Positions 7,754 through 8,563 of a stretch of 8,563 bases of DNA are shown piece after piece. The stretch is taken from contig JBMGUZ010000087.1 of NCBI GenBank assembly GCA_051530055.1, forward strand, positions 1 to 8,563, given 5' to 3'. Origin of the DNA: Neoechinorhynchus agilis (taxonomy: Eukaryota; Animalia; Acanthocephala). A program made the position numbers and the translations under genes. The notes below the pieces were generated by a model. It ran no database searches, was not told where the DNA came from, and saw nothing but the letters and a program-made list of their open reading frames with translations. Each line of letters opens with the position of its first letter. Positions within the stretch are counted from its first letter, which is position 1.

Positions 7754-8104
7754 TTATTCAAACACCAAGCTTTCGCCGTCCAACGGCTTCTTCAGGGTGT
7801 AATCTGCAATGCGAGTGGAGTGGAGGTTCATGACGCCTCGGGAGATTATCAGCGCTTGCGCTATCGACAGTTCGACGGGATCCTGCGCTTTGTACATTAT
7901 GCGCGTGGACAGCCGAACTGTTCCATCCGGGTTGACTCGCGAATAATGTTTCACCCACGGTGTCGTCACATACGATTGCGCACTTGGGTTCAACGAGTTT
8001 CGTACATGCTCGGTTACTCTTTGGCGAAGTGGCCTTTCTGTTTTGCCCACGTACGTGACCAAGTGGCCACGGTCAATCCGACACCGTTCACACCGGATCT
8101 CGTG
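7754..8104 (-). mobile_element. Penelope-like element GIY-YIG endonuclease domain (3' end of element, 5'-truncated)
   Basis: Open frame HEIRCERCRIDRGHLVTYVGKTERPLRQRVTEH...PWVKH...IAQALII...MNL matches PLE (V)YEI.C..C...YVG.T.R.L..R..EH...E(AL).I...LN. The stop overlaps AATAAA, and a hammerhead overlaps the last codons, as is typical of PLE pLTRs. Confidence 0.88.
7762..7800 (-). ncRNA. Minimal type I hammerhead ribozyme of the Penelope-like-element type
   Basis: Minus strand reads ACACC-CUGAAGA-A-GCCGU(UGG)ACGGC-GAAA-GC-UU-GGUGU. Stem I is ACACC/GGUGU, stem II is 5 bp, the core CUGANGA/GAAA is intact, and stem III is the palindrome AAGCUU. The predicted cut is between 7767 and 7766. Confidence 0.85.
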
Positions 8105-8563
8105 CGCGAGAACCTTCCTCCTGATCTTCTGCAGACGAGACCGTGTCGCCCGAAAGCATCAACCAAAGACCCACATCGACAGCGATGGGGCGTGCATATC
8201 GGGAGACCAAGTCTTAAGGATACTGCGATCCACGTTACCTCATCAGTAAGAAGAGTTCCCACTGATGCCAGAGGAACAGCCTCCAACCACGCACAGATTT
8301 TACTGTTGAAACTGCCAACAGTCTAGCTCGGACGACCCCATCGCGAGAACCTGAAAGTAGAGAGCTGTGAGCTCTCGCGACAAGAGGTCCGTCCCAGATC
8401 GACTGTCTGGGGCCATTCACGGCAACATGGTTAGCGCCTGTCTGCTGGCACCATTCCTCAACCGCCACTACTAAATCTCGGTCAAGACAGAACTTTTCCT
8501 TCAAAATTTTCTTTGATACTGGTAGGCTCCCCTCAAACGATCCAAGAAAGGCTGGCAAAGCCT
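8104..8563 (-). mobile_element. CRE-clade RLE non-LTR retrotransposon fragment (RT thumb end to zinc knuckle); one frameshift; continues past the window's right edge
   Basis: ALPAFLGS...RQSIWDGP...LL....RARLLAVS, then (restoring one G at 8293-8294) KSGAWLEAVPLASVGTLL...IAVSLRLGLPICTPHRCRCGSLVDAFGRHGLVCRRSGGRFSR. This is the characteristic pre-RLE CxC...H...C region of animal/fungal CRE-like elements. Confidence 0.85.

Follow-up and report, generated by a model that had tools for sequence, protein, structure and literature searches.

Retroelement lineages are known to have acquired or exchanged nucleases. Dualen, a retrotransposon without long terminal repeats (non-LTR), has an AP endonuclease (APE) plus a restriction-like endonuclease (RLE), and Dualen/RandI is a precedent for such exchange (PMC4640811). 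In Penelope-like elements (PLEs) the GIY-YIG nuclease is N-terminal in some elements and C-terminal in others; the canonical endonuclease-bearing (EN+) PLEs have a reverse transcriptase (RT), a zinc-finger linker and, C-terminally, a GIY-YIG domain, and heavy 5' truncation of PLE copies is known (PMC8557442). The present study concerns a stretch of 8,563 nucleotides from the acanthocephalan Neoechinorhynchus agilis (assembly GCA_051530055.1, contig JBMGUZ010000087.1, positions 1 to 8,563), called the window below and read along its minus strand. Here a long interspersed nuclear element (LINE) of the RLE-bearing type ends just behind its zinc knuckle and is followed by the GIY-YIG nuclease and 3' end of a PLE. 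The original prediction, made from the letters of the window, had left open whether this is a chimeric element with a swapped nuclease or a dead junction that a deletion, a template switch or an insertion truncated at its 5' end had left behind. Our results indicate that it is very probably a one-off, non-functional junction, at which an RLE-LINE copy truncated at its 3' end meets a PLE copy of the same orientation truncated at its 5' end.

The upstream half is assigned by homology to the RLE-bearing non-LTR group. When the fused protein was searched against a collection of 5.8 billion clustered proteins, 17 matched (P0001-P0017), the best of them an N. agilis protein with 87% identity; their coverage was confined to the LINE half, and no protein spanning both halves was present in that collection. 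In relatives from Lepidoptera, Octopus and metagenomes the knuckle is followed by RH..LND.I.RAL...EP.GL...DGKRPDG...WD.T, and relative P0013 carries an RVT_1 domain (PF00078). Like the RLE-bearing elements of the CRE, NeSL, R2, R4 and HERO clades, the window copy has a CCHC knuckle, after which its relatives all show the pattern RH...EP...(K/R)PD...D.T of a PD-(D/E)xK nuclease. Unlike them, it stops right after the knuckle, and no PD-(D/E)xK restriction-like nuclease follows in the window. A profile of twelve relatives had a sole match among solved structures, R2 of Bombyx mori (8GH6; 8gh6_A, residues 933-1013, knuckle and RLE), and this alignment was weak (E 0.21). What is shown is membership of the RLE-bearing group, within which CRE, the label used in the original prediction, is a candidate clade. 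An NCBIfam scan of both halves gave no families.

The LINE family is dense in N. agilis. Nine loci of the same assembly (L001-L009, ~190 kb in all) were reached through annotated proteins, a partial sample of the genome to which all our copy counts refer, and they contained about a dozen copies or fragments of this family. The window and the nine loci have several repeat families in common at 85-95% identity. By blastn, the LINE half was 85-94.5% identical to N. agilis copies overall, with 87% identity to L001 10028-10470 and 94.5% to L004 16318-16647. The 3' flanks of five LINE copies showed no common target. In L007 (8711-8967), an internal deletion of ~340 bases has removed the knuckle and brought the linker, the counterpart of window 8460-8558, into direct contact with the beginning of the RLE, so rearranged dead copies occur in the same family.

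In the window, the LINE is read in two frames. Frame 3 (8561-8295) gives ALPAFLGSFEGS...RARLLAVSTVKS (ALPAFL...AVSTVKS), and frame 2 (8292-8104) gives AWLEAVPLASVGTLLTDEVTWIAVSLRLGLPICTPHRCRCGSLVDAFGRHGLVCRRSGGRFSR (AWLEAV...PHRCRCGSLVDAFGRHGLVCRRSGGRFSR) with the CCHC knuckle HRCRCGSLVDAFGRHGLVC (HxCxC...H...C) at 8187-8131, the columns of which are invariant in 12 relatives. Across the frameshift the window reads TCTGTGCG (8297-8290), where the TCT GGG GCG of the parent copies has become TCT G-T GCG. The original prediction described this lesion as the loss of one G from a doublet; one base is indeed lost, but the three-way alignment shows a G>T substitution as well. The lesion is private to the window copy in comparison with the L001 and L004 copies. 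The window boundary at 8563 falls inside the RT-to-knuckle linker, and any LINE RT would lie beyond it.

The downstream half is identified by its relatives as the nuclease and 3' end of a PLE. Frame 1 (8104-7757) begins with HEIRCERC, reads HEIRCERCRIDRGHLVTYVGKTERPLRQRVTEH...DPVELSIAQALIISRG...LKKPLDGESLVFE, contains YVGKTERPLRQRVTEH at 8006-8053 and is open for 116 codons. An exhaustive phmmer search of this half against 1.84 billion representatives gave 47 matches, of which the best (E 1e-27, 6e-19 and 8e-17) were all from N. agilis; the closest relative had 61% amino-acid identity. The distant matches are open reading frames (ORFs) of 548-1145 aa with RT motifs, a linker C..C.......C and the nuclease at the C-terminus, and the nuclease of the relatives follows NVVYEI.C..C...YIGET.RPL..R..EH...H....H...E. 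This is the order of domains described for canonical EN+ PLEs (PMC8557442). The fragment resembles such elements (Penelope/Poseidon, Neptune, Nematis) in its C-terminal GIY-YIG nuclease with an interleaved CCHH motif, in the CX2-5CxxC linker and PLE RT upstream in its relatives, in a minimal hammerhead near the 3' end, and in its strong 5' truncation. It differs from them in its extent, which is limited to the final 350 coding bases plus the 3' untranslated region (UTR). It lacks the NVV residues, the beginning of the first beta-strand and the CX2-5CxxC zinc-finger linker upstream, and LINE sequence stands in place of a PLE-type RT, which is consistent with a 5'-truncated copy and not with an origin outside the PLEs.

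The nuclease itself has decayed. In a 38-sequence alignment, the window retains Tyr18 of YIG, Gly20, Arg24, Arg29, Glu32 and His33, together with Cys5, Cys8 and His53 of the zinc motif. The first tyrosine, Tyr1 of GIY (29/32 relatives), is a junction-made His in the window; His58, the second His among the zinc ligands (35/37 relatives), is Asn at 7931-7933, and the catalytic Glu83 (34/35) is Gln at 7856-7858. Neither the catalytic set (GIY Tyr, YIG Tyr, Arg, Glu) nor the interleaved CCHH zinc-finger motif is therefore complete, and these three losses, together with the LINE fragment in the place of the RT, set the copy apart from canonical EN+ PLEs. Two critical substitutions at ~5% divergence are what neutral decay would give.

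Membership of the GIY-YIG fold is supported by motifs and homology, not by structure search. The AF2 model of this half (pLDDT 79.6) has the order beta-beta-alpha-alpha-beta-alpha, in which strands and helices succeed one another as in a GIY-YIG domain. Foldseek gave no match below E = 1 in PDB, and in the viral library BFVD the top structural matches were intron-associated and GIY-YIG endonucleases that did not reach significance (E 0.16-0.3, TM 0.44-0.52). A profile of the 38 relatives retrieved no GIY-YIG entry from PDB. Matches to designed beta-trefoils, obtained with phmmer against PDB through 'RINPDGTV', were rejected as chance matches to repetitive designs. A word-indexed protein search with the GIY-YIG half alone returned 2 candidates and no match, but the index is incomplete for this query and its silence is not evidence: P0018, which shares the 10-residue GKTERPLRQR with this half and has E 1e-27 in the exhaustive search, was missed. 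Negative results of the word-indexed search on short queries should not be trusted. Several N. agilis hypothetical proteins are gene models on frameshifted copies of transposable elements (TEs), namely P0001 and P0017 (LINE) and P0018 and P0019 (PLE); P0001 leaves the LINE frame for another frame after RLGLP.

The features on both sides of the join are listed in Table 1. The blastn alignments with three LINE copies (L001, L002 and L004) each end at 8104-8108, and there those copies read CGC CAT TCT GAG ATC AAC... (RHSEIN) and enter the RLE. PLE relatives read ...GTY TAY GAG AT(C/G/A)... (V-Y-E-I/M) here, and the window reads ...CTCGCGC/ACGAGATCCGG (the slash marks the join), with CGCAC at 8106-8102. 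The end of the LINE alignments and the TAY GAG AT of the PLE relatives together assign the sequence up to C8104 to the LINE and that from A8103 to the PLE. This agrees, on the minus strand, with the earlier description of LINE homology to GGRFSR and a GIY-YIG frame from the CAC at 8104. The breakpoint lies inside the GIY Tyr codon (TAC) of the PLE and the join yields CAC in the PLE frame; the His in the Tyr position is an accident of the join and not a mutated Tyr. The original prediction was correct that the tyrosine is gone, but the H arises from a cut within its codon.

C8104 is common to the last LINE codon (CGC, Arg) and the first codon of the PLE frame (CAC), and the frames are offset by one base, so no continuous reading frame crosses the junction. 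As had been stated, one added base joins the frames. The LINE frame continues for 30 more codons past the junction and then meets a stop at 8016-8014. The idea that a restored C would recreate the parental RH did not hold: the result would be RH-EI against RH-SEI in the parents, and the AC is part of the Tyr codon of the PLE. Microhomology of AC at the join had also been proposed and is absent, the next LINE base being C and the previous PLE base T. The original prediction took the 1-in-3 chance of this frame relation as a reason for caution, and the relation carries no weight. Two other placements were considered. A join at the shared hexamer GAGATC (LINE parents CATTCTGAGATC, PLE TACGAGATC) was rejected because the preceding AC is that of the PLE and four LINE bases would be missing. 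PLE homology upstream of 8104, where tblastn extended to 8119-8158, was rejected because the LINE parents match 7-8 of the last 9 bases and the PLE relatives 2 of 11.

Table 1. Features of the LINE-PLE junction and its two sides in the N. agilis window
Feature	Positions	Strand	Evidence
RLE-type non-LTR (LINE) fragment, RT-to-knuckle linker, upstream frame	8295..8563	-	P0001-P0017 matches and blastn; runs past the window end
Broken Gly codon, shifts the LINE frame	8293..8294	-	Three-way alignment against GGG in the L001 and L004 copies
LINE fragment, second frame, ends ...CRRSGGRFSR	8104..8292	-	Columns invariant in 12 relatives; weak alignment with R2Bm
Breakpoint: last LINE base C8104, first PLE base A8103	8103..8104	-	Alignments of LINE copies and PLE-relative DNA
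5'-truncated PLE ORF, predicted GIY-YIG endonuclease domain	7757..8103	-	47 phmmer matches, column statistics, AF2 model
Minimal type-I hammerhead motif (putative ribozyme)	7762..7800	-	Pattern, conservation, fold; Rfam negative
Stop codon (TAA) of the PLE ORF	7754..7756	-	
PLE 3' UTR, 3' end approximate	7700..7753	-	Patchy similarity to PLE copies in L004 and L002 (GATTGTC...AAACA...ATAAAA)

The junction was not repeated among the other copies sampled (0/7 with a knuckle and 0/10 with a GIY-YIG domain). All seven of the other knuckle-bearing LINE copies continue straight into the RLE (RHSEIN...). No knuckle stands ahead of any of the 10 other GIY-YIG copies; these follow a PLE RT or linker, or are short 5'-truncated fragments, several of them truncated at or inside the EN domain like that of the window. 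These counts, together with the lost catalytic residues, favor the dead junction among the two possibilities raised at first. They speak against a real chimeric family of recent origin in Acanthocephala, of which the window would be a decayed copy and in which an RLE-type LINE took over the GIY-YIG nuclease and hammerhead-bearing 3' end of a PLE. The closest LINE relative, the L004 copy (94.5% over 330 bases), is 5'-truncated and otherwise a normal RLE copy, with an uninterrupted ORF (16647-15838, ...GRFSRHSEINNVISRAL...DGRRPDG...WDAT...) that is intact through the RLE to its natural stop. With so similar a relative being normal, any chimera would be very young, yet three residues of its nuclease, the GIY Tyr, the catalytic Glu and a zinc-ligand His, are already lost. 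In addition, the Tyr codon is cut at the junction, the first beta-strand is incomplete and the zinc finger of the PLE linker is gone; the absence of a protein over both halves points in the same direction. Unlike Dualen, a multi-copy family with intact ORFs, the window has a single decayed junction that is out of frame.

Several observations nevertheless weigh against a one-off junction, and some of them are those that a chimeric family would produce. Both breakpoints are near domain boundaries, as a domain swap would look: the LINE is left just past the knuckle, where the RLE domain begins, and the PLE is entered in the first GIY-YIG strand, at the start of the core. The pieces are co-oriented with frames one base apart, and single-base indels are common in long-read assemblies. 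The PLE frame is still open over its whole length, and nuclease exchange has precedent in Dualen (PMC4640811) and in the N- versus C-terminal GIY-YIG of PLEs (PMC8557442). In addition, an intact LINE RT and target-site duplications would be beyond reach, because the LINE upstream of 8563 is outside the window; the parental PLE at the breakpoint was deduced from distant copies, the nearest being the 61% relative; and the ~190 kb sampled through annotated proteins did not permit a genome-wide search for the junction. Taken together, a swapped-nuclease family appears extremely unlikely. The junction itself is, as judged from its letters, non-functional: the halves are out of frame, the LINE part is frameshifted, the nuclease is cut in its first strand, and the Tyr, His and Glu are lost.

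The commonest cause of TE-TE junctions is the simple nested insertion, here a 5'-truncated PLE in an intact LINE copy, with the RLE and LINE 3' end directly after the PLE. The density of the LINE family in N. agilis would make such an event easy to imagine. However, no RLE-coding or 3' LINE sequence was found anywhere in 1-8103, either by blastn at word size 9, which should find a 94%-identical relative, or by tblastn with 17 relatives. As no LINE remainder is present in this region, a nested insertion would call for a further deletion or for additional inserted DNA of more than 7.7 kb, and we regard it as highly unlikely.

The arrangement could also have been created by the assembly, through a contig mis-joined between LINE and PLE copies or through consensus errors at the missing bases. 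PLE tandem and inverted arrays trouble assemblies (PMC8557442), both frame lesions involve the loss of a single base, and the window was not placed among the annotated proteins of GCA_051530055.1, in which exact look-ups of eight junction-region ORFs gave no match. On the other hand, mis-joins normally occur inside a shared repeat, and here LINE and PLE have no sequence in common where they meet. The lesion at 8294-8293 combines a deletion with a substitution and is not a simple homopolymer slip, and H58N and E83Q are substitutions that provide an independent sign of decay. An artefact is therefore very unlikely.

LINE copies made by their own retrotransposition keep the 3' end and lose the 5' end, as seen in the truncated copies of L004, L005 and L007. 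A LINE copy without its 3' end cannot come from its own retrotransposition, so a second event is needed to account for the one-off junction. Short PLE fragments from the 3' end abound here, so the simplest view of the PLE boundary is that a truncated cDNA had its 5' end there. Most likely, target-primed reverse transcription of a PLE stopped early, inside the nuclease-coding region, as is very frequent in PLE copies; the 5' end of the cDNA would then have been joined, without microhomology, to LINE sequence, and both pieces would later have undergone neutral decay. Directly observed are the identity of the halves, the exact breakpoint, the lesions, the absence of the junction from the other sampled copies and the missing RLE remnant downstream; the order and mechanism of events are an inference. 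By rough estimate, the LINE partner could well have been a pre-existing genomic copy, with loss of the intervening target DNA, although the chance of this is somewhat short of even. A switch of the RT from PLE RNA to LINE RNA is a less likely route, and a later genomic deletion between two neighbouring copies is improbable. Chimeric retrocopies formed by RT template switching do exist, for example the U6-L1 chimeras of mammals. Like these, the window joins two unrelated RNA-derived sequences head to tail and in the same direction; the priming retroelement is the 3' partner, and the upstream partner lacks its 3' part. Unlike them, the switch, a possibility here, would be between two different autonomous retroelement classes, and any target-site duplications, which would prove a single event, would lie outside the window.

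The PLE fragment carries a hammerhead motif at 7800-7762, in line with the hammerhead-bearing 3' end of the original prediction. The motif is real as a motif, and we consider it a putative ribozyme. Its letters are ACACC CUGAAGA A GCCGU-UGG-ACGGC GAAA GCUU/GGUGU, where the slash marks the predicted cut between 7767 and 7766. Helix III consists only of the palindrome AGCU, a dimer-type arrangement. This fits the mini-hammerheads of metazoan PLEs, in which helix I is short, a base is bulged out 5' of helix II and helix III is a palindrome that requires a dimer (PMC4209133). The pattern had 1 match in the window and 0 in 200 shuffles, and the minimum free energy fold has helices I and II formed and the core unpaired. 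The block is conserved in PLE copies of L004 (two copies), L006 and L008 and degenerate in L002. Rfam reported no hammerhead in the whole window or, at lax thresholds, in 6800-8100. The mini-hammerhead sits within the last 13 codons of the PLE ORF (ORF end 7754-7795), and its CUGAAGA codes for the L-K-K/R in LN.K.EL....L.F, a C-terminal peptide conserved in the relatives, so that one stretch is both coding sequence and ribozyme motif. A second type of mini-hammerhead, CTGATGATGAACC...GGTTCGAAACGT with the palindrome ACGU as helix III, was found in L008 at 1171-1201(-), 1707-1737(+), 14772-14802(-) and 14843-14873(+). These sites form two inverted pairs, the arrangement expected of inverted PLE copies, of another family.

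If true, a nuclease swap would be a direct example of modular exchange between retroelement classes and would bear on the distribution of APE, RLE and GIY-YIG nucleases in evolution. The evidence points to ordinary transposon debris, and the locus has modest practical value. It serves as a worked example in which domain boundaries coincide at a TE-TE junction and can mimic a fusion protein, a trap for gene predictors. It also illustrates that the acanthocephalan genome of N. agilis is densely populated by the RLE-LINE family and by hammerhead-bearing PLEs.

The rest of the window contains other repeats. Its first quarter (1-1926) is a tandem satellite of ~160 bp with 12 copies, 87% matches and a higher-order period of ~479 bp, for which blastn gave no match in the nine N. 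agilis loci. Directly next to the satellite, at 2115-2640 (-), lies a piece of another retrotransposon. It is 88.7% identical to L001 14815-15301, and its ORF (...DFPTRLDAEPDKVFTNIDAY...SDHSP...) resembles the end of an AP-endonuclease domain. Part of a dynein heavy-chain gene's 5' region (P0067, residues 106-233) is duplicated at positions 3362-4624, with 87-90% DNA identity to L009 9122-10894. With a stop and an indel, the window copy is probably a pseudo-exon in a segmental duplicate. When a 3421-aa concatenation of the window ORFs was compared with the annotated proteins, only this paralogous dynein fragment matched. The dynein locus L009 provides an empty site within 3362-4624 and none for the junction. 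The empty site (L009 ~9250-9260) corresponds to a 315-bp insertion at 4222-4536 of the window, which has 79-nt inverted arms (90% complementary) and a flanking direct duplication, ATGAATTTATTG. A related copy is present in L007 (6203-6453), and the insertion looks like a small foldback element or one resembling a miniature inverted-repeat transposable element (MITE).

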